Assembly (NCBI GenBank): GCA_038496445.1
Contig: JALMLS010000332.1
Span: 62,001-126,000 of the forward strand
DNA: 64,000 nucleotides
Direction: 5' to 3'
Source: Trichosphaerium sp. ATCC 40318
Taxonomy: Eukaryota > Protista > Tubulinea
Both the position numbers and the translations under genes were made by a program. This document shows positions 2,687 through 64,000 of the stretch, in pieces (the stretch's first letter is position 1; each line of letters starts with the position of its first letter). The notes under the pieces are model-generated. The model was given only the letters and a program-made list of their open reading frames with translations. It was not told the DNA's origin and searched no databases.

Positions 2687-3976
2687 ATGAAACGTAAAAT
2701 GGAAGAAGAACAGACACCAAAGGCTTCACAAAACGTATTTTACCTTACCAGGCTTCCAGTTGAAGTAATAGTGCATATATTACAACAAGGATCATATACA
2801 CTGCGCTCAGCCCAAACATGCCACTTGTTGCGAGAAATCGTTCATAACCATGTTGGATATCCTAAAATCAATGTTACCAGCGAAAGTGAAGTAAAATTTC
2901 TCCACGGGAGTCCTTTATTAAAGAACTCAGTTATTTCTTTTAGTCTATTCCGTAAAGTAACCGACAGCCACTTGCAATTACTAGCAGGCGCTCATTCCAT
3001 CGATTTACGACTCTGCAGCAAAATAACAAATGAAGGATTGAAGGCCTTGGCAGGTGTACACACTATTCACTTACGGTTGTGTATCTCAATAACAGATGAA
3101 GGCGTGAAGGCGTTGGTTGGTGTCCACGTGATTAATTTATCACAAACAAATATAACAGATGAAGGTGTAAAGGCGTTATCTGGTGTACACACTATTCACT
3201 TAGATTGCACAGATGTAACAGATGAAGGTGTAAAGGCATTGTCTGGTGTACATAAAATTGTTTTATCGGAAACAGATGTAACAGATGAAGGTTTGAAAGC
3301 ATTGTCTAGTGTACATACAATCTACTTAAGGCGCTGTAAGTATATAACAGATGAAGGCATCAAAGCGTTGGCTGGTGTACATAAAATCAGGTTATCATAC
3401 ACAAAGGTCACTGACAAAGGTTTGAAGGCGTTGGCTGGTGTACACACTATTCGTTTACGTCATTGTACCTTAATAACAGATGAAGGTGTTAAAGCATTGG
3501 CTGGTGTGCATAAGATTGTTTTGTCACAAACAAATATAACAGATGAAAGTGTGAAGGCATTGTCTGGTGTACATAACATTATTTTATCACAAACAAATAT
3601 AACAGATGAAGGTTTGAAGGCATTGTCTAGTGTACACACTATCCACTTACGCTGTTGTGATTCAATAACAGATGAAGGTTTGAAAGCATTGTCTAGTGTA
3701 CATACAATTAACTTGAGTCTAACAAACGTAACAGACAATGGTATTTCGGTGTTGGCTGGTGTACATAAGATAGACTTATCACAAACAAATATAACAGATG
3801 AAGGTTTGAAGTCATTGTCTAGTGTACACACTATCTACCTACGTCACTGTAACTCAATAACAGATGGAGGTTTGAAAGCATTGGTGGGTGTGCACACTAT
3901 CGATTTGTCCAACTGCTACAAGATAACAGATGAAGGCGTTAAGGTATTAAGTGGTGCACATAAGATAGAAATCTAA
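2687..3976 (+). CDS. Intronless F-box-like + leucine-rich-repeat protein (about 16 short 21/22-aa LRRs)
   Basis: 429-aa ORF. N-terminal LTRLPVEVIVHIL...TC is F-box-like. Tandem ITDEG(L/V)KAL(S/A)GVHxIxL repeats follow. Confidence 0.9.
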   Translation: MKRKMEEEQTPKASQNVFYLTRLPVEVIVHILQQGSYTLRSAQTCHLLREIVHNHVGYPKINVTSESEVKFLHGSPLLKNSVISFSLFRKVTDSHLQLLAGAHSIDLRLCSKITNEGLKALAGVHTIHLRLCISITDEGVKALVGVHVINLSQTNITDEGVKALSGVHTIHLDCTDVTDEGVKALSGVHKIVLSETDVTDEGLKALSSVHTIYLRRCKYITDEGIKALAGVHKIRLSYTKVTDKGLKALAGVHTIRLRHCTLITDEGVKALAGVHKIVLSQTNITDESVKALSGVHNIILSQTNITDEGLKALSSVHTIHLRCCDSITDEGLKALSSVHTINLSLTNVTDNGISVLAGVHKIDLSQTNITDEGLKSLSSVHTIYLRHCNSITDGGLKALVGVHTIDLSNCYKITDEGVKVLSGAHKIEI

Positions 3977-10994: not shown

Positions 10995-11951
10995 TTAACC
11001 ACGTGTTTTAACATGATGTAGTATGACACCTTGAAGTTCCAAAGCATTCATTATTTTTGTACTCAGCTGTCCGCTATGAAACAAATATTTCAAACCAACT
11101 AATTTTAGTACACCTTCACCACTTATACATAAGCAATCATTAATATGAAGTGATTTTACACCAACTAAAGATGCAATACCAACATCTGTAACAGATTGAC
11201 AACCCGAGATATCAATTGTGTTTACTTCCAATCCTTTGAGCCCTTCATCTGTTACTTTAGTATATGCTAACTCAATATTGTATACACCAGATAATGCTTG
11301 TAAGCCTTCATCTGTCACATTGGTATACGATAAATTAATTCGATATACTCCAGCTAACGCTTTTATCCCTTCGTCCGTTATAGACCAACAATACCTCAAC
11401 TCAATACTGTGCACACCTTTTAATGCCTTCAAACCCTCATCTGTAACTGTATGAATACCAGATAAATCAATCTCATGGACCCCAGCTAAGGCTTTAATGC
11501 CTACATCTGATACAGCTGTGTTTTGTAAATTGATTGTGTGCACTCCAGCTAAAGCTTTGATACCTTCATCTGTTACTGAAGTACCATCAAGGTAAATGGT
11601 ATGTACTCCTTTTAGCGCTTTTATGCCTTCATCTGTAACACCCTTGCATTCAGAAAGCTGCACTGTCTTTACACCTTTAAGTAGCTTCAAATGACTATCG
11701 TTTAAGATGTGTAGGATAAAAAACAAACCAATTGGCGTATTCTGAAGTAAAGGGCTTCCAGAAAGCAATTCCACCTCATCTATACTTGAGATATTGATAT
11801 AGGGGTATCCTACGTGGTTATTGACGATATCTCGAATGAAACGGCATGTTTGAGCTGAGCGTAGTGTAAACGAGCCGCATTTAAGAATATGAACTATCAG
11901 TTCAACTGGCATGCCCAAGAGGTTGAAGTTGTCATTAAACTCACGTTCCAT
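10995..11951 (-). CDS. Intronless F-box-like + LRR protein, paralogue of 2687..3976
   Basis: Shares the N-terminal PVE.IVHIL..GS.TLRSAQTC...NHVGYP.IN and the VTDEG(I/L)KAL.GVH.I.L repeats, with fewer units. Confidence 0.9.
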   Translation of the reverse strand: MEREFNDNFNLLGMPVELIVHILKCGSFTLRSAQTCRFIRDIVNNHVGYPYINISSIDEVELLSGSPLLQNTPIGLFFILHILNDSHLKLLKGVKTVQLSECKGVTDEGIKALKGVHTIYLDGTSVTDEGIKALAGVHTINLQNTAVSDVGIKALAGVHEIDLSGIHTVTDEGLKALKGVHSIELRYCWSITDEGIKALAGVYRINLSYTNVTDEGLQALSGVYNIELAYTKVTDEGLKGLEVNTIDISGCQSVTDVGIASLVGVKSLHINDCLCISGEGVLKLVGLKYLFHSGQLSTKIMNALELQGVILHHVKTRG

Positions 11952-28400: not shown

Positions 28401-31400
28401 AAGCTGCTGCTAAGACTTCTGCTATGTCTACTGCGCAATTGATTCGTGCTTCAGCAGCTGTTGCTGCAGATTCAAGTGATCGCGCTGCTACCAGCCAGGT
28501 ACGCTATTAATGATGCCTTCTTTGACAAATGACTTCCTTCTCACTCCTTTTACTAGCTATCTGGATCTTCTAAAGGATTGTCTGATGCAATCCAAGAACT
28601 CTTGAATGTATGCAAGTACCTAAACCCTGCAGTCCGTGCTTGTGATGAAGCAGAAAGAGTACTAACTGATGCATTATCTCAACTCAACACAGCCCATATC
28701 AAAGCATCTGTGGGATCACTATCAGGAGGACCACCTGGTAAATCTAACGCTGGTATGTACTTTCTTGTATTTTGGAACGATCACTTTATTAACGTTGCTG
28801 TAGAATGTCAACAAGAGCTTGTACGTGTTAGCAAGGCTATGGCTGATACAATCCCTGGTCTTGTTGGTGGTTCCAAGAAAGGACCAGGTGCTCTTGCTCA
28901 AGCTTCTAGAGCTGTACGTCTATTTGAAAGACCATGTGTAGCATTTTTTTACTTACTTGAGAATTGCTTTTAGTTGAAAGCACAAATTCCTAAACTTGTT
29001 TTGGCTACACTAAACACTGCCTCAACAACAGCTGATCCTAAAGCACAACGTGACTTGCTTGAATTATCAAAAGATTTGGCTGAGAGCATGCTTGGTCTTG
29101 TACGATCTTGCCGTGACTACAAAGCAGGCGATAAAGCTGCTCAACAAGATCTACTCACAAGATCGAAAGCAGTACGTCTCCTTTTTGAGTTTAAAGTACG
29201 TGTTGACACACCAACTAACCAATTCCTTCCCTAGACATCACTTGCTATCTCACAACTCCTCACACCGCTTCACAGTAATGTACAGCGTCTTCGTGAACTG
29301 GATGTTGCAATAAAAGCAATCATGAAAGCTCTTGGTATGTTAAATCAACGTGCAACTCCGTCAGGCCGCCCATACGGTGTTATTCAAGCTCAATTGAAAC
29401 AAAAGGTATGTGTTTAAACTATTTGATTAAGAAAAACTTGTCTTCTAACATCTCTTTAATAGGCACTTGATGTCGCCATGACAGCGTCTAATTTACATTC
29501 TGCTGACAAGACGGATCTTGCTCGTATCTGTGCTGAAGCAAAAGACCTTGGTGACTCTGTACCTAAGATGGTTGTCATTGGTCGTGATGCTATTGCATCA
29601 ACAAATGAAGTTCAAGCCAAGAGTACGTTTTTCTATTGCAAAAAAAACAGTTTTTTTGTCGAACGGTGTCCTTACTTATTCCTTTTTAGAGCAAATATCG
29701 GCTGCTTCAGCAAATGTTGGTAAAGCCCTCTTAGGTCTTATCAGCGGAGCAAAGAAGGTTGGTAACAACCCACGTGACACAGCTGCCTCTCAAGGCATGT
29801 CAAACGCATTTAAAGCTGCATCAAAGGCTATATCTGCTTTGATTACAGCTGTTGCTGGAGGTGATACTACAATGAAGTATATGGACCAAGCATACAAGGT
29901 TATTGGTGCAGCAGTTCAAAAACTAGCCCAAGATTCCATCATGGCTCAAGCACAACAGCTCCAAGCAGGTCCAAAGGCTAAGGCAGCTCCTATGTCTGCT
30001 TTATTGAACGCTTTATCGAATACATCAAAGAAGGTAGCTGCTGCTTCAAAGAACTTGTCACAAGCCGCAAATATGACACCAGAACAACTTGGTAAAGCTG
30101 CTCAAGATGTTGCTAGAGCTGTTCGTATTATGGGTAATGTTGCTCATGATACTGCTACAAAACTACCTGATATTGTTGCTCAACAGAATCTATTGTCTTC
30201 AGCAAAGCAACTCGGTGTTACTGCACAACAACTCATCAACTCTGCAAAGGATATCTCAGCAGATAAGACAAACGAAGCTGCACGAAGAGCTCTTAGTGAT
30301 ACAATCAACTCTATCTCTAAAGGAGTAGAAGGATTGATTAGTACAGCTCAGACATCAGTAAACGAATCAGCTAGAGGTGAAAGAGAGTTAGATAGCGCCA
30401 TGAGAAACATTGAGGCTCTTCTAAGACAAACACCAAACGAACCAAATGCTACAGCCGAAGGCGTAGCTGAAGGAGCAACTGTACGTTCTCTCTTTTTGCC
30501 TTTCTTTTACTTACTATCTCTTCAAGGAAATGACAACAGCTGTTGCTCAACTTGTGTTTGCTATGAGCCAAGAAGAGATTATAAACGGCGCAAAAGCAGC
30601 TCTTAATGGAACAATGAACTTGCTAAAGCAAGGTTCTGGTGTTAGGAAACTAACTCAAAGAGCTGATGTTAAAGATAAGCTTCTGGGTTCTACTAGAAAA
30701 GCTGCACAAGCTATGATTCAGTTCTTGGATGTTTGCAAGGTTGATAGAAAAGATCAAGCCAATCAAGTCAAACTTGAAGACGCATCAACATCTGTAACAA
30801 TACTCATGTCAGATGTAATCTCTGCAGTTAATCTATTGCCAAATACAGAAGTATCTGTTGGAAAGGGAGACGATCTTGAGTCTGTTGCTGAGAAGGAACT
30901 CTCTGCTGCTGCCAAGATTATCGAGAACGCTGCTAAGACGCTATTGAACGCCAAGAGCGAACATACTGCTCCAAGTATTGATGGTATCATCAATGAAGAC
31001 GTACGCTTTAAAAAAACTTTCTTACTTTCTCTCTCTTTGTTGATATCTAACTTGTACTCTTCTAGAATATCACTGATGCTATCCTTGATGCTGCACGTGC
31101 TATTGCTATGGCCACAGGAACACTTGTTGTGTCTTCTGCTGCTGCACAGAAGGAACGTGTCGCTAAAAACCTCGCTACTGGAGGTAAACGTTACAGAAAT
31201 GATCCTACATGGGCCAATGGTCTTATTTCTGCTGCAAAATATGTCGCTGGTTCTGTACAAATGCTTGTAAGAGCATCTAATGCAGCTGTTGAGGTACGTT
31301 GTTTACAGAAGCTCGAAAAGGAAAAGAAGTTAGTGTTAATGATTTTTTTAGGGTTACGCTGAAGAGTCAGCTCTTATTGCTGCTGCTGAGTCAGTAGCTG

Positions 31401-31702: not shown

Positions 31703-32269
31703 AAAACGAAAAAAAAGAGAAAAAAGAAAGAACCTCCATGTGCTTCTTTCTTTTAAAACCATTTTTTTTTGTATTGTAGATAAGGGATTTTTTTACCATC
31801 CCGACCCACCCCTCACTCTTGTTCGTCCATAAAATAAAGTTAAATAGTTATTTCGTTAGAACTTCGAGTGTTGTGTTGCTCGTAGAGCATTGCTAGTGTA
31901 CATCAAAATAAATGGTTGCCGTAGCAGTGGAAATGATTGTTAACTTGAATTTCGAATTATATTAAAGCAAGTACTCTGACTAATCTCCTAGCTTGTAACG
32001 CCTGTGCGTGTGAAGTATAACTATCGACTGCTGAAAAAATATACGGGTTGTTTTCGCACGTGGGTACAGCTATTCAAACAAATTCCTTCCAAGCAAATTG
32101 GCTTTAAGCTTATTGGCACTACATAGTCTCAAAAAAGAACAGTATTTGGCTTATTTTAGTCGCAGCTTTAATATTAAACTCCAATAAGATACCAAACACT
32201 ACAACCTTCTTGAGACTGTCATTGAAAGCGCTTACAACTATTAAAAACCAAAACTTTTTTGTAAATGAA

Positions 32270-33085
32270 ATGTCAACATCACGTGTTTGCTTGTTATTAC
32301 AGGCTCTTCCACTTGAAATACAGCTTGATATTTTAGATATTGACTACGAAATCTATCTAATTTGGCCCTCTCTATCGAAACAAACAGCCAAAACAACAAG
32401 GTTCGATTCTGAGTTAAGAAAACAAGGAAAGTGGATACAAAAAACAAAAACCGGGAAATCTTCACACAAGAAGAAACGTCAGGCTTATTGGAAACATGGT
32501 AATCTTGATGGTCAATATATAATATGGTACAAAGAAGGTCAAATACATGAAGACTGTCATTACATTGAAGGTAAACGAGAAGGAGAACATAGAATCTTGT
32601 ACAAGGATGGTAAGATAGCAAAGTTAGTTAGTTACTCAAATGGAAAAAAACAAGGTGAATGTAAGTGTTGGCACGTGAATGGAAAATTGTTTAGTAGATG
32701 TTATTACATTGATGATAAAAAAGATGGTGAATATTATACATGGAGTTATGAAGGTAAAAAAATGACTATGACACAGTATTTAGAGGATAAACGACATGGT
32801 AAGTATAGAAGATGGTACGAGAATGGACAATTACGTGAGTATTATCACTTTATGGATGATAAAAGACAAGGAGAATACAAGGCTTGGTACGAGAATGGGC
32901 AAATAAAAAAGAATAGCCACTATGTCAACGATTTTCTAGAAGGAGAGTACAAGTATTGGAACAAGAATGGTCAAATCCTTAACCACTCTAACTATGTACA
33001 TGGAAAACTGCAAGGATTATACAAGAGTTGGAATGAAGATGGACGTTTAAGACAGAGCATGCATATACGTGGATCTCATTCATAG
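32270..33085 (+). CDS. Intronless MORN-variant (YwqK-like) repeat protein with an F-box-like N-terminus
   Basis: Probable ATG at 32270. LQALPLEIQLDIL...WPSLSK is followed by about 8 repeats of GxYxxWYxNGQ-x5-YxxxK. Confidence 0.85.
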   Translation: MSTSRVCLLLQALPLEIQLDILDIDYEIYLIWPSLSKQTAKTTRFDSELRKQGKWIQKTKTGKSSHKKKRQAYWKHGNLDGQYIIWYKEGQIHEDCHYIEGKREGEHRILYKDGKIAKLVSYSNGKKQGECKCWHVNGKLFSRCYYIDDKKDGEYYTWSYEGKKMTMTQYLEDKRHGKYRRWYENGQLREYYHFMDDKRQGEYKAWYENGQIKKNSHYVNDFLEGEYKYWNKNGQILNHSNYVHGKLQGLYKSWNEDGRLRQSMHIRGSHS

Positions 33086-42867: not shown

Positions 42868-45099
42868 TTACCGTAGCTCAACATTGAATTTCTCAACGGT
42901 AGATTTGATGAGTTCGTTTTGTGCAATATCTACTTCTGTATTTGTCAAGTTTCTGTCCATTGAGCGATAGTTTATGCGATAACAATGGCTTGTACGCTTT
43001 GTTTTAGGGTTTGTCCATTTATCTAGCAACTAAAGAAACCCGAAAGTTAAAAATACAGCCACTTTTTTGAGCAAAGTAAGAAAAAAATTGCCAAATCAAC
43101 AAAAAAAGTTTTGATTTAGTGATAACGGAGTAACTCGAAAACAATAAAAATACAACACAGTAATAACATACCTCTATGTTTTCTATATTATCACCACCAC
43201 ACTCGCGCACGTGCTCGTAAAATTCGTTCTCGTGATACGGCTTAATGTTACCGTTAGCTGGTTGTTTTTATTGATTATTCTAACTGTATACGTACTCTGT
43301 CTGGTAACCAAAAAGTTATATCTTTGTAGCATGCAGGATACTTCGAGTATGGCTTAAACTTTACTATTTTACCTGACTTAAACTGCTTTTTGAACCTGAA
43401 AAAAAATTAGAAATAAGCGCGTTGTGCATAATAAAGGTAGTTGTAAATGCTTTACTGCATTGTTCAACAAAACCTACAACTAAATACTGCAATACTACCA
43501 TCATACCTTTCGTCGTCGCTCCAGAATAACCGGATATCAGGAATTGCAAACAAAACCATAGCTAGGCGCTCTAAGCCCATACCAAATGCCCAACCTTTAT
43601 GATCAGCCATGTCACAGTTCTTTAGAATATCTTTATGTATAACACCACACCCTTAAAGCATTTAGCACTCTGCTGAACGAACAACAAAAAAACCGATTTT
43701 TTTTTGGAAAAAACTAAAATGTCTCTGGAGACCCAACGCTCCACCTGATCTAACTCAAGCTTTGCTTTACTTCTCTTATTTTGTTATAGGATGGCTTACC
43801 TCACCTCAAAGACGAGCGAAAAACTCGCTCATCAAAGTGGCGTATAGTCCGCGAACACAACAATAAATTTGAAAAACTGTCATCAAAAAATAAAATTTCT
43901 GAATTAAGATTTCTGTTGTGTCGTGGTAGTGCATCCAAAAACTTTAAAATGTCTTGTTTTCTATTAAAGCATATCTTAATTACACTAACCTAGCACTTCT
44001 AACCAATCACCATTGTAAAAAATTTCCAACTCTGTTGAAGGGTCTGTAAACGGAAAGTATTCGTCAACCCTAACATTTTATTAGCGTCAAGTCACGAGAG
44101 AAAGCTGTTTTGAGCAGAAAAAGAAAAAACGACAAAAAACTTACCAGCGCATCTTAACATCGCCAAATAATTCTTTGGCCTGTATAAAGCGTTAATACGC
44201 ATCCACGTGGCACCTTGTAGAGGCTCTACGCACCATGCCCTCAAGCGCTTTCTTCATGTCGTTGAAAATAAATTCTACGTCATTTCCGGTTCCAAATCGC
44301 GCCATTTCTTCTGGTGTAAATATACGCACACCCTCAGTCTGCACGAATGAGTACAAATTCGAAAGAAAAATAAGAAGACAGAACAGTACCTGATGGAAGA
44401 TTGGATAGTGCGTAGGGTCTACCGAGTCCCTTCTGTAAACGTCGGCGGTAAGCAAGAAGTTCTTTTCACCCTAGTAACGGAATAAACACAAAAACACGTA
44501 AAAGTTTTTTGGGAAATACCTTTCTCATGAGTTCTGTTTGGTGAGCTGACGTATGCGCACGAAGCATTAACTCATCGTTAATGTAATAAGTGTCAGTGTC
44601 AGCGCGGCCTGGGTGATCCTTAGGAAAGAGCAAGTCATCAAAGTTAGCCTAAAACGCAACAATTAGCTCGTTTAATGTATTTTGAAGCGTACCTTGATGG
44701 TTACAACTGGTGAAAGCCCATCGTGCGCTTTAATTTGTGCACCGTGCTCTGTAGGGGCGTACTTCTCAGCGAAGTACTTTTCTATTATCTGCTTGATTGT
44801 ATGGACTGGGTGACCTTGTTGGAGAAAAAGGCGCTTGTCAAGTCTATCGATAACATGTTTCGATATGTTATAAGCCTTGTGCGTCTTGTTTTTCTCAAGG
44901 ACGTCCATTACTACGCCGCATAAGTTCTAAGCGCATTCATTTGTCTCTGACCCTCTGTAAGTTGATTGGAAGCGGTACAATAGTTTTTGCGGTTTTTTGG
45001 AAAAACCTGAGTTCGCACACCATTATTTCGTTTGGGTGTTCGCGCACTGCTCCGATAGATCGGCAGGGAAGCTGTACTCCTTGTCACTATCCCTAGCAT
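42868..45099 (-). CDS. FARS2: Mitochondrial (monomeric) phenylalanyl-tRNA synthetase
   Basis: Arg/Ser-rich presequence. Motifs [91 protein letters not shown], and the C-terminal anticodon-binding [17 protein letters not shown]. Confidence 0.96.
43717..43852 (-). ncRNA. Candidate intronic H/ACA-like snoRNA in the longest FARS2 intron
   Basis: GC-rich hairpin (cacttt-gatgagcgag/ttcgctcgtc-gaggtg) with an H box ATAACA 14 nt downstream, and a distal ACAttt. Confidence 0.35.
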
Positions 45100-45572: not shown

Positions 45573-48500
45573 ATGCAGGACGCTCAAGACGAGAATATTA
45601 ATCCAAACTCTCCACAAGAAAGAGAAAATGGCACAACCAAATCGAATCAAAACGAAGACGTTATAATGGGTACACCTCTAACCTAAGATTGTCATTTAAT
45701 TGTACTCAGAAGGAGAAGATGAGCCAGTGGATTCTCAAGAACAATTTGACTTGAAAATGGATGCTATGCTTCTTGAAAGTCTGTTAGACCCTGAGGAAGA
45801 AGAGACACGCGTACGTTTTTTAACAGACTGTCAAGAGTACTTTCTAACCACACTGTTTAACGGTTTTCAAATTTATTGCTGTTTATCCCGCTCTCTAACA
45901 CGTGATTAGAAGCGACCTATAAAAGATGTTTCTGGAGCGGTTGTTTCTCCATCTAAAAGGGTCAAACGGTACTGCAGCAGTTTGTATACTTGCGTAGCAC
46001 TAATTTGTATCTCACCAGGGATGTCGAAGTTAAAGAATCGCCGTCGGTTTCCAACACGTTATCAGGAACTCAGAAGAGGGCATTGGTTAAGAAGACGAAT
46101 AAACCTTCTTTGTTTGGTGGATTTTCTTCCGCAGCTTCGCTTGGTCTTAGTAGCGCTAATACAGATAAACCTGCTAATACATCTATGTGTAATGATGCAC
46201 CTGAGGACTCTTTCGACGCAATTATAGCTTTAGCAAAGAAAAACAAAGGTGGGAGAAATCAATTCGCAACACCTTTCAAAGCACCTGGAAAGAAGGGTGG
46301 CGCAGTGACACGAAAGCGTTCATCAGCTTCTACGACAAGTGGTTTTGGCTCAGCAGCTACAACAAGTGGTTTTGGTTCTGCAAAACAATTATTGTCTTCA
46401 ACTTCTACAACAGGTGACTACCCTGGTTTCAGTTCTGCTAGTTCAGTGCATGTCGAAGGCAACGACAATGAGCATAATACAGGATTTCAAACAGCTAACA
46501 ATATGTTGGGAGATCAACACAATTCAACAGATCGTACACCGCCATCAAATGGAAACTCAAATGAAATGCCAAGTTTTTCTTCAGCAGCAAGTCTTGGAGG
46601 CTTTGCTTCTGCGAATACTCTCACTAGAAAGCCCGAAATTCCTCCATCTAGTGGTAGTGACAACAGCTCAAAGTTTACTGGGTTTGGCTCTGCCAGTGCT
46701 CTTTTAAAAAGCTCGAAATCAACACAGCAAAAACAACAAACTGAGATGCGTGGCTTTTCTTCAGCTTCAAGCCTAAACAAGGATAATTTTACTAGGGGAG
46801 GGTTCTCAACTACAAATAAGATAGGAAATACAGATTCACAACAAGAAGCAAACACAGACGCTGCTGTTTCGTTTGAGGAAATGATAAAACGAGCAAAACA
46901 AAAAAGCGGAAACAAACAAGTTAAACAGTTCAAAGTCCCAAGAAAGTCAACTAATACTACAAACACCGGCACACATGGAGGCTTTATAACAGGTTCTAAT
47001 ATAATGCAACAGCAAAAAGAGTCCACAAGATCACCTGAGGCATCACCAGCTATTGACACAAACGAGATACCAAGTTTTTCTTCAGCGGCAACTCTTGGAG
47101 GCTTTGCCTCTGCGAATACGCTCACAAACAAGACCACAAGCGAAGGGAACTCAAACATTGATAACACAGGAACGAGAATGCCACCAGGAGCAAACACTGA
47201 CACGAATATTTCGTTTGAGGAAATGATAAAGCGAGCAAAACAAAAAAGAGGAAACAAACAAGTTAAACAGTTCAAAGTCCCAAGAATATCAAGTAACACA
47301 AAAGTCGCCAGTAAGCGTACTACAAGCTTCCAAACAGCGTCTAAAATATCTTCTACGACAAATGGCTTTGGCTCAGCAGCTACAACAAGTGGTTTTGGTT
47401 CTGCAAAACAATTATTGTCTTCAACATCTACAACAGGTGACTATCCTGGTTTCAGTTCTGCTAGTTCAGTGCATGTTGAAGGCGACTACAATGAGCATAA
47501 TACAGGATTTCAAACAGCTAACAATATGTTGGGAGATCAACACAGTGCAACAGATCGTACACCGCCATCAAATGGAAACTCGAATGAAATGCCAAGTTTT
47601 TCTTCAGCAGCAAGTCTTGGAGGCTTTGCTTCTGCGAATACAATCTTGGATACTAAAAATGAAGAAACAAAAGAACAGTACAGTGGCTTTGGAAGTGCAA
47701 AATCATTCATGAAAAAGAATGGGTTTAGCTCAGCCAAAAACTTTGTGAACAATGCTGGAAACAACTCTACCAATCGCTCAAACAAGAGCACAGGCTTCTC
47801 TTCTGCCAAATCTATGATGAATGGGTCATCTAAGGCACCTAAGAAAGCCACAGAATCCCCAAACACCTCAACAAGTGCTGATACCGATTTCGATCAAATT
47901 CTTAAAAATGCTCGAGCAAATCGTAAACAATCTGCCTCACACTTCAAGTCTCCGCGAATATCGAATACTAAGAATCTTCCTAAACCACGAACCCGTACAT
48001 CAGGTGGTTTTTCAAGCGCTGCTTCGCTTAAACTTGGTGATGATAACGATGTGGTAATGACTGATTCTTCTCATCAAGATGCGTTTGAAGCTGCCTTAGC
48101 TAGAAGAGCAGGAAAAGATAATACTCCAAGTTTCAATAGATCTAGAATATCTAAAGCATCAACGATGGATTCACCAATGAGGAGCACTATATCGAGTCGT
48201 TCTAGTTTCGTTACACCTACCAAAGTACGATGCTTTTTTTTCTTTGAACTTTTTTACAGTTTATACTGACGTGATTAGCCTGTATTGACTTCGCCACCTG
48301 TTACACCTTTGAGTGTTGGTCCTAATACCATAGTATCTTCTCCAGGATTATCCAATATAACCAAGGTACATCACAAGATTGATACAGGACTCGTTGCTTA
48401 TTGATTCTCAATTAGACTGAAATAAGTGACTTGATTTCTGGTGTTGATTTCTCAGAAGATGTATTCTCAGAAGACCGACCGCGTATAGTTGCTCCAGCTT

Positions 48501-51500
48501 CACCACTCCCTTCTCTTGCATTTGTGAAGAACAAATTCAACTACGGATCAAAATCAGCGCCTACAACACCAATTCGTTCTTCACCTCTTTGTCGGACTAC
48601 TACCCCATTGTACGTCAAATTAAAACTTTCATAACTCATCTCACCCGTTTGCTTCTATAAAACTTGAAGCACGTGATCACTTTCTACGTCTTTTAATAAA
48701 AGATCACACTTCTTATTTGTGTTAGAGCGAGAACACCTCAAAGAGCTATGCAACGTACTCCTATGAAGACGTTTAGTACTAGTCTCGGAGGTCCACGTGG
48801 TTTTAAGACACCCAAGGGGTTTAAAACACCTAAGCATACACCTCTAAGGCCAAGGAGCAAGACACCAAATACCCTGCCACGACCGAAGAGTAACAGGAAG
48901 TTCCCTGATAAGTTTTATCAGAAATATAAAAAAATGTATGAAGCGTTATATTTGGTCAACATCTTTTTTTGACATTTTTATAGAACAACTAAGATATCTG
49001 CAACGGCTTCTAAAAAAGACATTATAAAGCCAAAAGAACCACCTCTTTGTTTATGCGATATAACATCGAAGAAAAGTAAGTTCGTTATCAAGTCATACAT
49101 ACTTGCTTACACGTTCTTTTTTTCGCTTCAGAGAAAATTTCTTTGCGACAATATGCTGAGAGTAGAAACCGTGAACCTATTCCTTGGAGTTCAGAAGCAT
49201 TATTACAATCAGGCATAGACACCCGTATAGTAGAAATGACGAGCGACTCCGCAAAAGTAAGAAAAGATCAACAACTTCAAAGCTCGTTTCTTGTTAACCT
49301 GTTTTACTAGGACTTTTTGTTTACTCATAATAACAAAACAATCGGCCCAGCTGCCATGCTTCAGTTTTTATTGGATGCAGGTGTTAAACCAAAGGAGATT
49401 TCTCTTCCTTGGGTGAAGAATCACTGGAGGTTTATCATCTGGAAGCTAAGTTCAATGGAAAGAGCATTCCCAGTTGTATGTTGCATCTGTTTCTTAACTA
49501 AGTGATAATTAATCAACTGTTAGGAATATGGTGGAGTATACTGTACTCCAGAGAGAGTATTAGAGCAGTTGAAATACAGGTATCAACGTGAAGAGATATC
49601 AGTGAAGAGACCGATTTTTAGACAAATGTTAAATAAGGACGATGTACGCTGACTCTTTGTGTTGTTGCAATGTTGTCCTTACTTACTTTAGGATTGCGGT
49701 CGTTATATGATAGTATGTGTTACTGCTATAAGAAAGATACCAACTCAAGCTGCATACGATGCCGCTGTACTGGATAGTAGGAGTTACAAGCCAACAGATG
49801 CATCAGCCAAAACACCGCCTGGTAAAGGCAAACAACCTGTTGTTGTAGGTAGTGCTAATGCCATTGTGGAAGTCACTGACGGGTAACTTGTGTATTAACA
49901 GCTTGCGTTAATTAATTAATTAGTTGGTATGCCATGCCAGCGCTGATGGACCTTCCTCTTACAAAGTGGGTGCTGCAAGGCAAGATCTTTCCTGGAATGA
50001 AACTTCATATAAAAAATGCTTTTATAAACTCTGGTACGTTCAATATTCCACTAACACTGTTACTCTTTACGATATTATCTAATCGTGATATTATAGACGA
50101 AGGTCAAGAACCACTTGAACTGACAGATGGCACTTTTCTCAACTTACAAGCGAACAGGTTTGTTTTAAAACTGTTATTAGAATTCAATGAAGAAAAGATC
50201 ACTTATTGACTTTCGTATAGCACTCGCCGTGCACCTTGGTATAAGAAACTAGGAATTGTATTCAAACCCACATTTTATGTAAATATTGGATCTTTGAGGT
50301 CTAAAGGTGCGCTTAACGCACGATGAGAAAGAAATAGATTTTATTGCCTGGAAGCCAAAACTCAAATTGTTTTTACTAGGTGGGATGATACCTGGCCTCG
50401 ATTTACTTGTTTGTCGTGTCTACCCTATTGTATATATGGAACGCAAAGGTGAAGACGGACCAACATTAAAGTTGACAGAGCGTGGTAATGATGAACGAAC
50501 TAGAAGGTATGTTAATATTTTAAGAATATATAAGACAAAAAGTACTGATTACATTTTAAAGACATCAAGAGCTACAAAGTAATGCAGCCCAAAAGGAGGT
50601 TGAAAAATTAACAAAAGAGTTATCAGAAGATCATCTGACAGATACTTTAAGTATGCCTGCATGCTTGGATGACATTGATGATGGAGGTGTAAGTTTTTCC
50701 TTTTTTTGGGAAATACATGTTGCATAAAACGCTTTCCCTTCCTCTGTGATTTTTGTTTACTCTTGCGCTAGACTCTACTCCAAATATTCAGAGGATGTAA
50801 GCAAAACACGAGCTTTCTCCATCGCCTTTCTTATGAACAACAAGAAGAGCTTCAAAAGGCTCAATATGATGCGAAAATAAGCGATCAAAACTATATCCAA
50901 AAGGAAGTTCAAAAACTTTTGGATGATACACCAGAACTTTGTCGGTACGTTATTTTTACATCTGCATTCACAGTGTTCATTTTATCTTATTATTCATTTC
51001 CTACATAGCAAGGTGTCGAGGTTACTTCGAGTCAAAGTCCAAGATTTCCCTAAAGAAGGAAGAAACCCTGATAAAATATCAACAACCTTCCTCTCCGTTT
51101 GGGACCCACCTATGGATTTGCTTGATATGTTACGTGAAGGAAAGCGTGTATCAATGCTTAATGCAATGCCTGTGAGTTATTATTATTAAGACTATGACTA
51201 ATTGATTTTAAACTCAAAGGCACCAATGGATACTATTCCAGTTTCGTTACGAACATCAAAACGAACAAGGTGGGAATCTAAGCAAGATCCAGCACCACAT
51301 TCATTTAAACCACGTGTTGCTACGCCTATATTCAACCTTAAAGATATACAAACAGATCAAGCATATGGTAAAGAATTTGATGTTGTTGGCGTACGTCCTT
51401 TGTTTAAAGCTTTGAACTGTTATTTTTTTCTTACTTTTTTTTCAGGTTGTTGTGGACTCTACTACTCCTGTTGGTATAGATGAGCGAGATGACCGTGTCA

Positions 51501-51977
51501 CACAAACAATATATATAGCTGATGCTCCTGGAGATATACTACGCATTGACATTGACCTATACCCTGACGAATTACTACCAAAAGATTGGTTGTACTATAA
51601 TGAAAAATGTATGTATATTTTTACCCAAACTTTACTATGTTCTCAACTGACGTTATCTCACTTTTTCTAGCTCCATCTATTCTTTACATAAAGAATATAC
51701 GCTATATGATGCAAGATGATAAATCTGGATTTCACATGGCAACAGGTGATTCGTTTTCTGTTGTTTCAGTTCGAACAAGAGAAGAACATTTACTTAGTAG
51801 ACGTGCTGTAATAGATGAGTGGCTGTCTAGGTATGATTTCTTGTTTTTTTCTTTATTCTTTCTTGTTCTTCGCTTTACAAACCTTTTTTAATTTGTAGTG
51901 ATGAAGAAGCTTTAAAGAAAGCACAAGATTCAATGTATAATGCTTCTGTAAGGACTGTATGTTTAGACAAGATGTAA
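45573..51977 (+). CDS. BRCA2: BRCA2 homologue (helical + OB-fold DNA-binding domain) with an atypical repeat-rich N-terminal half
   Basis: WVKNHWRFIIWKLSSMERAFP, PERVLEQLKYRYQRE, VEVTDGWYAMPALMD..L..GKIFPGMKL, LQANSTRRAPWYKKLG, GGMIPGLDLLVCRVYPIVYME, LSVWDPP.DLLDMLREGKR and EFDVVGV. Confidence 0.93.
46327..47641 (+). repeat. Intragenic duplications in the large BRCA2 exon: about 292 bp (46327-46618 / 47350-47641) and about 98 bp (46847-46944 / 47189-47286)
   Basis: Near-identical in-frame copies at offsets 1023 and 342. A third partial copy of the PSFSSAA.LGGFASANT block lies at about 47070-47125. Confidence 0.93.
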
Positions 51978-52227: not shown

Positions 52228-54941
52228 ATGGCCACTTCCCACGTGATATTGATAACTGCTTCTTTGTTGATATCTTGTTTTCATGTGGTTAATGCAGTGC
52301 CAAACGTTTTACTTTTAATGGTAATCAAGCGTGTAAATAATTACATCGCACGTGATTTACAATACCTGTGTAGGCGGACCAGCATCGACACGATGTTCTT
52401 AGCTACACAGGGAACAAAGTACAATTAAAAAACCGTTGTTTTGCTCGAAACCGTTTACTAACACGTGGTAGGCTGTTTTGACGCCAAATATTGACTCACT
52501 AGCCAAAGAAGGTTAACCTTGCTTTTCTTGTTTTGACAACTTTTCGCTTACGAGTGTACTAGGTGCTTTCTTTTCTCATGCATACTCGAGGTACAAAAAC
52601 AACCAACAGATTTGTTTCCGGCACCAGATAAGATTCGTGTTCTTCTTACTGTATTTCTAGTACTCCAACATGTACGCCTGCCCGCGCTGCTCTGCTTACA
52701 GGACAATCTCCTTGGAATCACGGTATGCTCGGTTATGGAAGGGTAGCAAGTGAGTGATAAAAGCTCTCAATGTTCAGTTTTTGACCTTGAACAGCCAAGT
52801 ATCCTGTTGAGATGCCTCGTGTGTTTTTAGACAACGGATTCGCTACTGCAGTTATTGGCAAAGACCATTTTGGATGGAACAATACAGACGATGAAGGCAT
52901 CAGGTACAACTACAAAGTAGAAAAATATGTAACGAGTTGGAAGCTAACTCATTTTTTAGCCATGGATTTCAATACTTACGTATCTACGACGGGCTTGGTA
53001 AAATATGCTGATGTACCAGGTGGTAACTTAGTTATAGGTGACGGTGTTGATACAAACCATGGTGGAGAATTCGATGACTATGACGCTTGGTTTCAGACCA
53101 AATAGTACGCCCTTCTCTTTTTTCTTCTTTTTGTTCAACTTTTGATTTAGTCCTGGAAAGAACCCTTTAGCAACTGGGTTAGATTGGAACACATGGCACG
53201 GAAAGCCATATATTTACCCCGAAGATGTACATCCAACAGTAAGTCAATAATGCAGTACAAGCGCTGTTTTACAAATACGCAATTCAGGCTTGGACTGGAA
53301 TGAATGCTATTTCTTGGCTAAAGCAGTTCGATAAAAAACAACCGTTCTTCTTGAAGGTATCAATTATTTCGCCTTACATAGTTATTTACGCATCTTAATA
53401 GGTTTCATGGCACAGACCACATTCACCGTAAGATCATCATACAGTATAATCAACTCAAGAGTTCATACTGTCCTAGATACGATCCGCCAAACAGAATTTT
53501 TGAAAAAATGTCCACCAAAAATATGGCACCAATTATTGGTACTAGAGAATCCCTTGAGCTTCTTTTTTTAGATTCTAAGTGCTTGAATATAGAGCCTAAC
53601 ACTTGGGATAGCAGATACAAAGATGGGAAAGGATGTGGTACGCAGTATGTAAGAAAAATAACTAAGACCAACTAGGAGGCGTTGATGCTTGGTGTGGATT
53701 GTTTCCTTCAAATGAAACAGATATCTCCAAGTACGTGAAGCTAATCTTTGTTTTAAGATACTCTAAATAATGTCTATTTATAGGAGAGCTTACTACGGAT
53801 CCGTGCAGTTTGTAGATGAATGGTTAGGTCAAGTACTTGAGGAAGTAAAGAACCAAGGTTTATGGAATAATACGTTTATTATTTACACTGCTGATCATGG
53901 AGATATGCTTGGCGACCACTATCACTGGCGGTAATAACACCACTTAACCTTAAAATAAATTACTAAACCATCATAGCAAAGGATTCCCATACGAGTCATC
54001 AGCGCACGTGCCAATGATAGGTGAGTAACGCTTGTATTTTTAACCTTTTTTTACGCCGGAGCAACAATTGGTTCGTTCTTTCTTATCTTTTGTCTTTAGT
54101 CCGCTGGCCAGAGTCAATGGAAAGTGTTGTTAAATTGTCTCGTGGGTCTACAATGGATCAAGTTACTGAGCTTCGTGGTGCGGTCTTTGTCAATCATTGT
54201 TTGTTCATTACTAACTTGGTTTCTTTTCACAGATATCTTACCTACATTTGTTGATGTTACAGGTACAGCAACCATGTCTTAACATGTAGATAAACTTCTA
54301 ATTCTAAAAGGTGCCAAACTTCCCACGGGAGCAAAAAAGAGGGATGGGATCCCTATCACGTGTATTTTGAAGGACCCTCAGGGTATTTAATTTTGGCTTT
54401 CACAAAAAAAAAGTTCCCCTTTGTGTTACAATTTATAGGATGCAAATGGCGTGAGCACCTTGATCTAGAACACGATATTGTGTACAACAAAACTGTGCAT
54501 TGGAATGCATTAACAGATGGTAAAATGAAGGTACCTATTTCACATTAAGTAAAGACGTTCTGATACTGATTTTTTCTTCTTTAGTACATTTTCAGAGCTT
54601 TCTTTGGAGACGAACAACTTTTTGATTTAACCCTCGATCCAAAGGTAACTCAGACGCCCCTTTGCATTGATATAACGTAAATAGGAAACACACAACTTAG
54701 CAGAAGATGCAAAATACAAGGTACAACTATGCTACCCTAAAGTAGCTAATCAAGAATAAAGGACACTCTGGAACTGTGGAGAAACAGAATGGTTAAACAG
54801 TTTGAGCAAGAAGGTACTTCATTCATATGTGCTTGGTAGGTGTATTAACAATGACAAGGGCGTGGTGTAGAATGGGTTAAGGATGGTAAACTACAGCAAA
54901 GAGTAAAAGGACAGCTCTATAGCCCTAACTATCCTCAGTAA
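52228..54941 (+). CDS. Secreted formylglycine-dependent (aryl)sulfatase; about 20 short introns
   Basis: Signal peptide, then PNVLLLMADQHR, TPNIDSLAKEG, STPTCTPARAALLTG (CxPxR), GKDH, SWHRPHSPYDPP and NTFIIYTADHGDMLGDHYHWRKGFPYESSAHVPM. Confidence 0.95.
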
Positions 54942-61315: not shown

Positions 61316-64000
61316 TTAAGTTGATGGTAAAAGACATTTTTGTATTTGTTTTACCACCTTTGCAATCTTAACAAGCTGCTTCAAGTCTTCTGTTTCATAA
61401 AGAATAAAATCCTTTATACGTTTCAAGTACGCTTTAGCGTTAACATAATGTATTGATGTTATATCCTGAGCAACACGTAACTTTGATTTCATACCATCAA
61501 CAGGTCTAGAATAAACTTTTTGCTCAGGTTTAGAAACAAAAGCTTGTGCCATTGTCAACCCCTGTTGACAAAGAGTTAGCGTTTAAATCACGTGGCAATA
61601 GAGTAAATAGTCTACCTGGTTTATGAGTTTCATCTTCTCTGCAGCAGCACGTAAGGCTGCTACACCTTGAGTTTTTCTTATTTGTAAAAGTTGAGTTTCA
61701 AGGCAGTTATCAATTTCTTGACAACTTGCTGCTAGAACATGTTTGAAAAGCTTTACTTTATCTTCTGTAGAATCTTTCTTTTCAGCAACTTCATTTTTCG
61801 ATTCTTCTGGAGCATTAAAAGCCATTGGAAGCGAACTAAAAATACAATAAATAAAAGAAAAATAAAACGAAATGGGTTTCAAAGAAAGCACAAAAGGTTC
61901 TCTTGTTACCCTTTTCTGCGATGACCACTCTTTCTTGGAGTAGCTCCAGGTCTTGGAGCAGAACCTCTTTTACTTCGAGCATTTGAACTAGTCCAGTAAT
62001 AAGTATAAACCTGTAAAAGGCTCGCAAAGAAAGGAAGGGGTTTTTTTGAATCAAAAAACAAAAAAAATAGTTTAATACTCACGCTGGTTCTTTATCATAT
62101 ATAGGAGCCTTGTTCGCTGTTGAAGGAAACCACATAGATTCCTGAATTTCAACAAGAACTAAGAAATGTAAGCACTTGAATAAACGCGAAACTAAAATGA
62201 TAAAGTTGTAAACAAAAAAGCATACCATATTTATATTGCCACTGGACTATTGACTTATCTCGTGACCCTGTTAATACACACCCTCTTCCACAATCTAAAA
62301 TACATCTACAATCGTCCTCGTGGACTTTAATTTGCTTCAAGCAATCAAAGGTCTAAACAAAGGGTAATAAGCAAACACAACCGACATTGAACAAAAAACT
62401 TATAATTTTTAAACGTACTCTAGGGCTATATATGCGCACTGTACCGTGTCGTGATCCTGCCCATACGTACGATACACCAAACATAATTAAGGACAGGGTT
62501 AAAACCCTGTCATCTGTTTTAATTTCGTGTACATACTCACGACGCTAAGAAAAAAATCAGAAAGTTTTGATAAGGAAACCAAAAAAAAAACACAGTACCC
62601 AACGATCCCAAATTACAATTTTATGATTGCCACAAATCCACACGTGATTTCCAACTAATAAAATAGAATTTACTAAACCAACATCACAACGCCATGATTT
62701 AAGGCATTGTCCGCTTTCATACTCAATAACATGAATACCAGAGGCAGTACCAACCCAAACATGCCTATTTGAAAAAAAAAGTTAGACCTGGACTAAAAAC
62801 CGCGTACATACCTTTGACCCTCCAATCCATTATCTATAAAATACATACAACCAATAGGATCAGATACAGTCAAAGTCCCAGCAGGTTGATTATCCTTCCA
62901 AATATGAATGTGACCATTAACATCACCAGTCCATATTTCACCGGTGGATACCTCTTCAGGAACGAGCATCATTGCCTAAAAGCAAGCTATGTTAGAAATT
63001 TGGCTCTATCTATAGTTCTCTTATTTAAACAAACCTTAACTATACTTCTATGTTTTTGAAAACGTGTTATAAGCTCACAAGTCTACAAACGAAGTCAGAA
63101 CCAAACAATGTCAAAAAAAAAAACCAAAAAAAAATTAGTTGATATTATACCATGGAGTCCCACACTGATACTGTAAAGTCCTCGGATGCAGCCCACACAA
63201 GACTACCGTTTGTTTCAATCATATATATTTGCTTATCATGAGCAACAACATTTTTGACTGGTGCATCGGGGTCAATACCAATAGGTGTTTTTGCAGTTGA
63301 TCGTAGTTTATAAATAAAAATACTTCCTCGTGATGAACCACACCATACTTTATCACGGACCTTTGTCATACATATAATACCCTGATTACCATCAGGTGAT
63401 GTATGTCTAGAGTCCATAACCAAACGATCGACTTCTAAGTCTAAGACACGATCGAGATTTTCGGCATACTCCGCAGGAGCCTAAAACGCAATCAGAAGTT
63501 TTTCATTTTCCAAAAATAATTTGTCCTGGATACAGATTTCCACGTGCGAGCTTTGAAATATAAAGAACGCAATGATGACGTATTTTTCATTGTAATAAAA
63601 AATAACTAATGATGTTTTAAAGATTTTTACCTTCTCTTCAATTAATTGCTTTTCAAGTTTGTTTTTTATCAATTTTATATTTTTCTGAATAAGTTCAAGT
63701 CCTTTCTCATAATCCTCATGGGTTATCTTTAACATATCAGTCGATATTTCTTTTGTAGGCGGACGCTTTGCCTAAGACATTAACAGTGAGATTATATAAC
63801 CTAGTAACGGTAGTTTAAACATACACCAATCTGACCCAAAAAATGTCCAATCTTTTTACGATAATTTGTAATTAACGGTCCAAAAGGCTTCATGTAAACT
63901 TCACCTTCCTTATGAGACATATTCGCTATAGATTGTACAATTTTTGATGCAAGAATAAGACCACGACGTGCACGTGGTGTAATACCTAATACCAACATAA
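61316..64000 (-). CDS. RasGAP-domain + WD40-repeat protein; 3' part, starts beyond the window end
   Basis: RARRGLILASKIVQSIAN...EVYMKPFGPLI matches the end of a RasGAP domain. Beta-propeller blades follow (KVWCGSSRGSIFIY, AHDKQI...VWAASEDFTVSVWD, VLTGSRDKSIVQW), then a coiled-coil tail. Confidence 0.85.

Follow-up and report, generated by a model that had tools for sequence, protein, structure and literature searches.

The stretch of DNA analysed here (the window; 64,000 nucleotides of contig JALMLS010000332.1 from Trichosphaerium sp. ATCC 40318, positions 62,001 to 126,000) contains a predicted BRCA2 gene whose largest exon carries an array of short motifs resembling the peptide by which RAD51 binds to itself. 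Coordinates are those of the window, and all parts of the gene lie on the forward strand. The gene model was built by hand from reading frames and splice signals and predicts a gene at 45573..51977 (+) with 23 exons, separated by 22 GT-AG introns that measure 40-116 nt, encoding 1,688 codons plus a stop. The model is a single open frame with one terminal stop, the frame is restored at every intron, and the donors of the modelled introns are mostly GTAYGT or GTAAGT, the acceptors YAG. Exon 4 (46019..48224, +; 2.2 kb, aa 86-821 of the model) lies within an open frame of 770 codons (45957-48266, +), which is closed by an in-frame stop at 48267-48269; the next in-frame exon is 54 nt away from the end of exon 4. 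For the introns following exon 4, the predicted splice junctions are 48224^48279, 48365^48416, 48609^48726, 48935^48984 and 49075^49132 (+).

Exons 9-23 (49132..51977, +) are assigned, from Pfam matches and the model, to a DNA/DSS1-binding domain (DBD) that comprises a helical domain, OB1, tower-like helices, OB2 and an OB3-like region. Pfam was run on pieces of the DBD corresponding to open reading frames (ORFs) or exons. PF09169 (BRCA-2_helical) matched the ORF 49311-49502 in exon 10 with 52.8 bits (cut-off 25; E 4.8e-14), and PF09103 (BRCA-2_OB1) matched the ORF 49916-50206 with 31.8 bits (cut-off 25.6; E 1.5e-7). PF21318 (BRCA2DBD_OB2) reached 20.3 bits, below its cut-off of 27, and the tower and OB3 regions, run as exon-sized pieces, had no Pfam match at E<=1. 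An earlier reading made from the letters of the DNA (the sequence-only reading) had named the gene BRCA2; the helical and OB1 matches on the downstream exons, together with the continuous 23-exon model, bear this out, and judged by its domains the gene is a genuine BRCA2 orthologue. In the model, with its predicted splicing, the recombinase-type motifs stand N-terminal to the DBD on the same polypeptide.

Exon 4 is predicted to encode a disordered recombinase-binding region that contains all of the FxxA-type units (A-motifs) and five modules of a different kind, in which a helix is followed by an FxxP motif. In the frame-2 translation of 45957-48266 (+), 22 of 23 FxxA fit the strict pattern [GS]F[SGAQ][ST]A; without exception these 22 fall within 46090-48050, with Phe codons from 46122 to 48009. 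The sequence-only reading had put their number in the large exon at about 22, and the count from the translation agrees. When these residues were shuffled 2000 times, the mean count was 0.10 for the strict motif (maximum 2) and 4.1 for FxxA (maximum 12), and the six frames of the remaining ~62 kb of the window yielded only two further strict motifs. The distance from motif to motif ranges from 9 to 107 residues and is exactly 9 in five pairs; the sequence-only reading had noted that some motifs are only 9-10 residues apart.

The array opens with the unit GFSSAASL (46119..46142, +) and closes with another GFSSAASL (48006..48029, +), both located by motif scan. Between them lie a cluster of eight units (46341..46775, +; Phe codons at 46344, 46371, 46428, 46485, 46575, 46602, 46683 and 46755), a pair belonging to an older 80-nt repeat family (SFSSAATL and GFASANTL, 9 residues apart; 47073..47123, +) and a cluster of ten units (47325..47816, +; Phe codons at 47328, 47367, 47394, 47451, 47508, 47598, 47625, 47688, 47724 and 47796). 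Two degenerate units, GFSTTNKI (46800-46823, +), in which Ala is replaced by Thr, and GFITGSNI (46980-47003, +), in which it is replaced by Gly, flank the second helix + FxxP module (H2, see below) on its two sides.

A position table of the 22 units revealed a core of eight residues, G-F-x-S/T-A-x-x-hydrophobic. With Phe taken as position 0, Phe, S/T at +2 and Ala at +3 are each present in 22/22 units, position -1 is Gly in 18/22 and Ser in 4/22, and position +6 is hydrophobic (L, M, V, I or F) in 20/22, compared with a background of 17% in the exon (binomial p ~7e-14 for 22 units and ~4e-11 for 16 independent units). The units had been described as 'bare' FxxA motifs, which they are not, given the residues found at -1, +2 and +6. 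Both degenerate units retain Gly at -1 and Ile at +6. The same pattern characterises the self-oligomerisation motif of the recombinases. A published list of oligomerisation motifs covers 21 RAD51 proteins of eukaryotes and 24 RadA proteins of archaea; in it, +6 is F, Y, V, L or I in 45/45, Gly occupies -1 in 21/21 of the eukaryotic RAD51 motifs, and S/T is found at +2 in most of those listed (e.g., GFTTATEF, GFTSASQL, GFTSAVAY and GFVTAADF; supplement, PMC4855620). The heads of the human BRC repeats (e.g., GFHTASGK and SFRTASNK) have S at +4 in 6/7 and G at +5 in 5/7, and their +6 residue is K or T, never hydrophobic (supplement, PMC4855620). The third-position S/T stabilises local structure, Thr capping an alpha-helix in the RAD51-RAD51 interface and supporting a beta-turn in BRC4, and bare FxxA tetrapeptides bind humanised RadA in the 100-µM range (PMC4855620). 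Because the core pattern, including the hydrophobic +6, fits the RAD51/RadA motifs and not the BRC heads, the units belong, by their residues, to the class of RAD51's own docking peptide and not to that of the BRC hairpin heads. The correspondence with the RAD51/RadA motif (human GFTTATEF, Arabidopsis GFTSASQL) holds position by position. In RAD51, however, the motif is single-copy, resides in the linker that joins the N-terminal domain to the ATPase domain and is preceded by P-M/L, whereas the units described here are repeated 22 times in a BRCA2 and the residues before them are variable. A profile of the 22 units searched against PDB sequences returned no match at E<=10.

The BRC repeat profile PF00634 matched neither the whole exon nor any other piece of the window at E<=1. 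When ten pieces of 40 residues, beginning 8 residues ahead of a Phe, were scanned, a single partial match was obtained (11.9 bits, cut-off 20.3), in which TGFQTANNM, from the cluster 46341..46775, aligned with profile positions 2-10 of 29; Pfam therefore detects a BRC head at most and nothing of the other two thirds of the repeat. Neither Gly at +5 nor Lys at +6 occurs in any unit (0/22), the position table shows no hydrophobic pattern at +8/+10 of the 22 units, a regular expression for hydrophobic-F-x-[DE] had no match 10-30 residues downstream of the units, and F-x-[STI]-A-x-G-[KRT] is absent from all frames of the 64-kb window. Both the PF00634 check that the sequence-only reading had proposed, which produced no match above threshold on the exon and its pieces, and the residues at +5, +6 and in the LFDE range uphold its statement that no unit carries the continuation of a BRC repeat. 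This BRCA2 is without a Pfam-detectable or canonical BRC repeat. Nor are the units simply truncated BRC heads, an idea rejected because the hydrophobic +6 and the missing S-G-K point to the RAD51 motif class. Five helix starts of the form x-F-[DE]-x lie 23-36 residues after an A-motif. Their F-[DE] might conceivably act as a substitute for LFDE, from which they differ in geometry, with a polar residue ahead of the Phe and the helix behind it instead of in front. For the canonical BRC repeat there is the BRC4-RAD51 structure 1N0W.

Vertebrate BRC repeats (PF00634) are likewise multi-copy, lie in a disordered region N-terminal to the helical/OB DNA-binding domain, and contain FxxA with S/T as its third residue and, in most cases, a Gly ahead of the Phe; the A-site on RAD51 is presumably the common target. 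The units in Trichosphaerium sp. differ from them in length (~8 residues instead of ~35) and number (22 copies instead of 8), they have neither the S-G-K hairpin turn nor the helix with the LFDE or hydrophobic-hydrophobic-x-[E/D] module, and their +6 residue is hydrophobic where the BRC heads have Lys or Thr (PMC4855620).

The second repeat class in exon 4 comprises five modules of the type x-F-[DE]-x-x-[IL]-x-x-A-basic, with F-K-x-P-R 16-19 residues further on (P parts FKVPRKS, FKVPRIS, FKSPRIS and FKAPGKK; the fifth, FNRSRIS, is degenerate). Module H1 (46206..46298, +) combines an F[DE]xx helix with FATPFKAP, H2 (46869..46949, +) consists of SFEEMIKRAKQK and FKVPRKS, H3 (47208..47288, +) is an 88% nucleotide copy of H2, H4 (47886..47963, +) joins DFDQILKNARAN to FKSPRIS, and H5 (48078..48152, +) pairs AFEAALARRAG with the degenerate FNRSRIS. 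H1 and H5 were recognised by motif pattern; in H2, H3 and H4 the helix is predicted. H4 may also resemble the part of human BRCA2 directly ahead of the DBD, a likeness to which no weight is given here. The core of H1, FATPFK, has the same F-x-x-P-F-K layout as human PhePP, whose core FVPPFK corresponds to F2406, P2409, F2410 and K2411 (PMC11229353). Eight FxxP occur in the model, all in its N-terminal disordered part; basic flanks accompany FKVPRK, FKSPR, FKAPGKK, FATPFK and two FKTPK, and FVTP (aa 816) is followed by one Lys only. P-motifs are defined as F-x-x-P with basic flanks, bind at a site distinct from the A-site and are filament-stabilising, whereas A-motifs compete with self-association (PMC11229353). 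The helix + FxxP modules and the FKTPK motifs look like members of this filament-stabilising class; a profile of the five modules gave chance matches only (E>1) against the PDB. Since the five modules are interspersed among the A-motif clusters and interrupt the chain, exon 4 is a mosaic of A-motif clusters and P-type modules, and the notion of an array of FxxA alone had to be abandoned.

AlphaFold2, run on the single sequence of exon 4, predicted a chain with a mean predicted local distance difference test score (pLDDT) of 36.7 and only three short helices as regular elements (exon residues 286-293, 399-407 and 624-636), all of them parts of helix + P modules. The exon 4 product is thus predicted to be disordered, as had been proposed before; a single-sequence prediction is weak evidence, and it agrees with the S/T/N/G/K-rich composition. 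The proposal of an 'FG-like' chain fared less well: the FG dipeptide occurs in only six of the 22 units (GFGSA), the invariant positions are F and A, and 146 of 736 residues (~20%) are charged, with Phe accounting for 6%. The condensates that the sequence-only reading suggested as a possibility would have nothing but the composition in their favour.

Between the array and the DBD, a Ser/Thr-Pro-rich basic linker extends from the end of exon 4 to exon 8 (48153..49029, +) and contains two tandem FKTPK P-like motifs (48799-48837). The linker also has ~15 S/T-P sites, several of which fall within FxxP motifs or adjoin them; regulation of the CDK (cyclin-dependent kinase) type could be possible at these sites, judged by their pattern. 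In human BRCA2, S3291, which lies beside TR2, is associated with CDK-type regulation. On the other side of the array, a bipartite stretch resembling a nuclear localisation signal (KR ... KRVKR; pattern only) lies in exon 3 and extends by one base into exon 4 (45910..46019, +), and a candidate acidic amphipathic helix (FDLKMDAMLLESLL, then EEEE) is located near the N-terminus (45730-45807). In vertebrates, BRCA2 is bound by PALB2 near its N-terminus.

By its repeat structure, the array grew through nested duplications. A 292-nt block (46327-46618) is repeated at 47350-47641 with 97% identity, an 80-nt block is present in three copies (83-85% identity), and a 117-nt block in two (88% identity). 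Six of the ten units in the cluster 47325..47816 sit in the 97%-identical copy of 46327-46618; therefore, six of the 22 motifs are very recent copies and ~16 are independent. The figure of 22 stands as the number of motifs present, but not as a number of independent units. The invariant Ala is encoded by GCA (8), GCT (6), GCG (5) and GCC (3), the Gly of the core by all four codons, and Ser at +2 by both the TCN and the AGY families. In the 97% duplicate, six synonymous and six non-synonymous differences were found, all outside the eight-residue cores, with one of each directly preceding a core, and the older, diverged copies have kept the five core positions while their flanks diverged. Because the invariant residues vary in their synonymous codons and the changes in the duplicate avoid the cores, the motif is maintained by selection at the protein level.

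We consider it fairly probable that exon 4 encodes an arm of RAD51-like A-motif units that acts by avidity and without BRC repeats. The exon would then be the recombinase-binding disordered arm of BRCA2, with short A-motif units in place of the ~35-residue BRC repeats. The Phe and Ala of a unit would dock into the A-site of a RAD51/DMC1 protomer in the way the linker of the neighbouring protomer does, and the monomer would be capped. A single unit would be weak, and the array would gain affinity and a high local concentration of recombinase by multivalency. The P-type modules may hold oligomeric or DNA-bound recombinase, and the C-terminal helical/OB DBD would put the loaded complex on single-stranded DNA. 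For BRC repeats an effect of number is known from a moss BRCA2, in which four BRCs, acting jointly, exceed single ones 100-fold in affinity (PMC12412785).

Several points weigh against this interpretation. Both the binding of RAD51/DMC1 at the A-site and avidity as the working principle are what we infer from the sequence, and splicing of exon 4 onto the DBD exons is predicted by the gene model. In the moss, replacement of the Gly after FxxA by Ala abolishes BRC-repeat binding (PMC12412785), which argues that the Gly-less units cannot use the hairpin mode; this would itself fit a RAD51-like docking of the units. Two motifs at a distance of 9 residues are unlikely to be occupied by two RAD51 or other recombinase molecules at once, which would put the real valency below 22 and probably closer to 12-16. 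Neutral expansion of a low-complexity tract could also account for part of the array. Finally, relatives were not found: a phmmer search with exon 4 against 1.84 billion representative proteins had 0 matches at E<=0.001, a feature search of the ESM Atlas gave no usable match, a word-indexed protein search produced no candidates either with the helical-domain exon or with the neighbouring sulfatase-like exon, the latter used to look for a syntenic contig of a relative, and none of the results of metagenome scans with the helical exon and the whole array exon was confirmed by tblastn. That the searches stayed blank is put down to the coverage of the databases and to the fast evolution of a disordered region, and is no proof of a unique design.

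An alternative that we regard as unlikely is that the units are eroded former BRC heads, only a few of which still bind RAD51, and that their number results from recent slippage in a low-complexity tract, or from its segmental duplication, and not from selection for valency. The 97%-identical 292-nt duplicate and the other nested repeats would be expected from such a process, Ala has already been lost in two units, positions 2-10 of the BRC profile align, below threshold, with one unit, and in T. brucei the length of the BRC array differs between strains (PMC2408642). However, older copies keep the five core positions despite their diverged flanks, the codons of the invariant residues vary synonymously, and a hydrophobic +6, shared by nearly all units, is absent from BRC heads.

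Quite improbable, in our view, is that the motif has a different partner or underlies a material property of the chain (cohesion like that of FG-nucleoporins, nuclear transport or condensates), with RAD51 bound elsewhere, for instance by the FxxP modules. An S/T/N/G-rich chain with 6% Phe and predicted disorder, and GFGSA in six units, would suit such a role, but the conserved element is F-x-S/T-A-x-x-hydrophobic, 16/22 units are without FG, and ~20% of the residues are charged; the match to the RAD51 motif at five positions, in a BRCA2 context of which FxxA-mediated RAD51 binding is the hallmark, also speaks against it. Exon 4 might even be a separate gene or a pseudo-exon, with the DBD gene starting downstream, since exons 5-8 are of low complexity and without database support, and no homologue of exon 4 was found among the 1.84 billion representatives. 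We think such an artefact of the gene model very improbable: 22/22 predicted introns are canonical, are short and restore the frame, their donors being similar to one another (GTAYGT) and their acceptors YAG, the 770-codon frame is under protein-level constraint and lies 54 nt from the next in-frame exon, and a BRCA2 consisting of the DBD alone would be without any recombinase-binding motif.

In BRCA2, BRC repeats are taken to be what defines recombinase binding, and the number required, with the reason for it, is still debated. Most unicellular eukaryotes have 1-3 BRC repeats, with Trypanosoma brucei as an extreme of up to 15, in which the units are 44 residues long and 14/15 identical (PMC2408642). 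The BRCA2 of T. brucei offers a parallel in scale, as it is likewise that of a unicellular organism with an unusually large recombinase-binding array that has grown by recent duplication, and repeat number matters there for the efficiency of recombination (PMC2408642). Its units are nearly identical tandem BRC repeats, whereas those of Trichosphaerium sp. are short, spaced by 9-107 residues, mostly diverged and not BRC. A second protozoan parallel is BRC1 of Leishmania infantum, which binds RAD51 without a working LFDE module and has led to the proposal of an FxxA-only ancestor of the BRC repeats (PMC9162458). In LiBRC1, unlike in the units described here, an extended N-terminal beta-hairpin compensates, the length of a BRC repeat is kept, and there are two repeats only. 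The joint occurrence of FxxA- and FxxP-type motifs with basic flanks on one disordered chain is shared with BRCA2 PhePP/TR2, FIGNL1 and RAD51AP1 (PMC11229353); in exon 4, however, both classes have been amplified and alternate along one exon, with 22 A units and 5-7 P-like units. In the literature searched, no BRCA2 was described that has short RAD51-like units as its only A-motifs, nor one with so large an array.

A bolder version of the favoured interpretation, which we put forward tentatively and consider rather doubtful, is that the BRC repeat, with its fold-on-binding mode, was abandoned in this lineage and that at least 20 recombinase polymerisation peptides alternate with filament-stabilising FxxP modules. 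Such a distributed loader of high valency and low affinity would concentrate RAD51/DMC1 monomers and pass them to growing filaments, and it would either reflect the FxxA-only state that has been proposed as ancestral to BRC repeats or have arisen independently. A natural BRCA2 with a DBD but with many minimal RAD51-type peptides instead of BRC repeats would be a ready-made test of whether the FxxA contact and valency suffice for mediator function, and would show if the hairpin and LFDE modules were added later for affinity, as proposed from the Leishmania structure. The units could also serve as short natural peptides to probe the A-site of a divergent RAD51, and exon 4 presents a clear case of alternating A- and P-motifs.

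Two minor features of the modelled introns were noted: introns 2 and 4 have a common 3' end, ACGTGATTAG (45899-45909 and 48269-48278), and CACGTG is found inside intron 6 (48670-48675). Among the neighbouring genes, a phenylalanyl-tRNA synthetase-like gene with several exons (43467-44926, -), recognised by the motifs HYPIFHQ and GMGLERLAM, is divergent from BRCA2 and lies ~650 nt upstream of its predicted start. The sulfatase-like exon (52791-53102, +) is located just downstream of BRCA2. Farther away in the window are a talin rod/I-LWEQ-like ORF piece (29518-30603, +), which would fit an amoeba-like organism, talin being known from amoebae, animals and the unicellular kin of these, and the ORFs of two LRR_6 proteins and one MORN-repeat protein (2687-3973, +; 10998-11951, -; 32210-33082, +).

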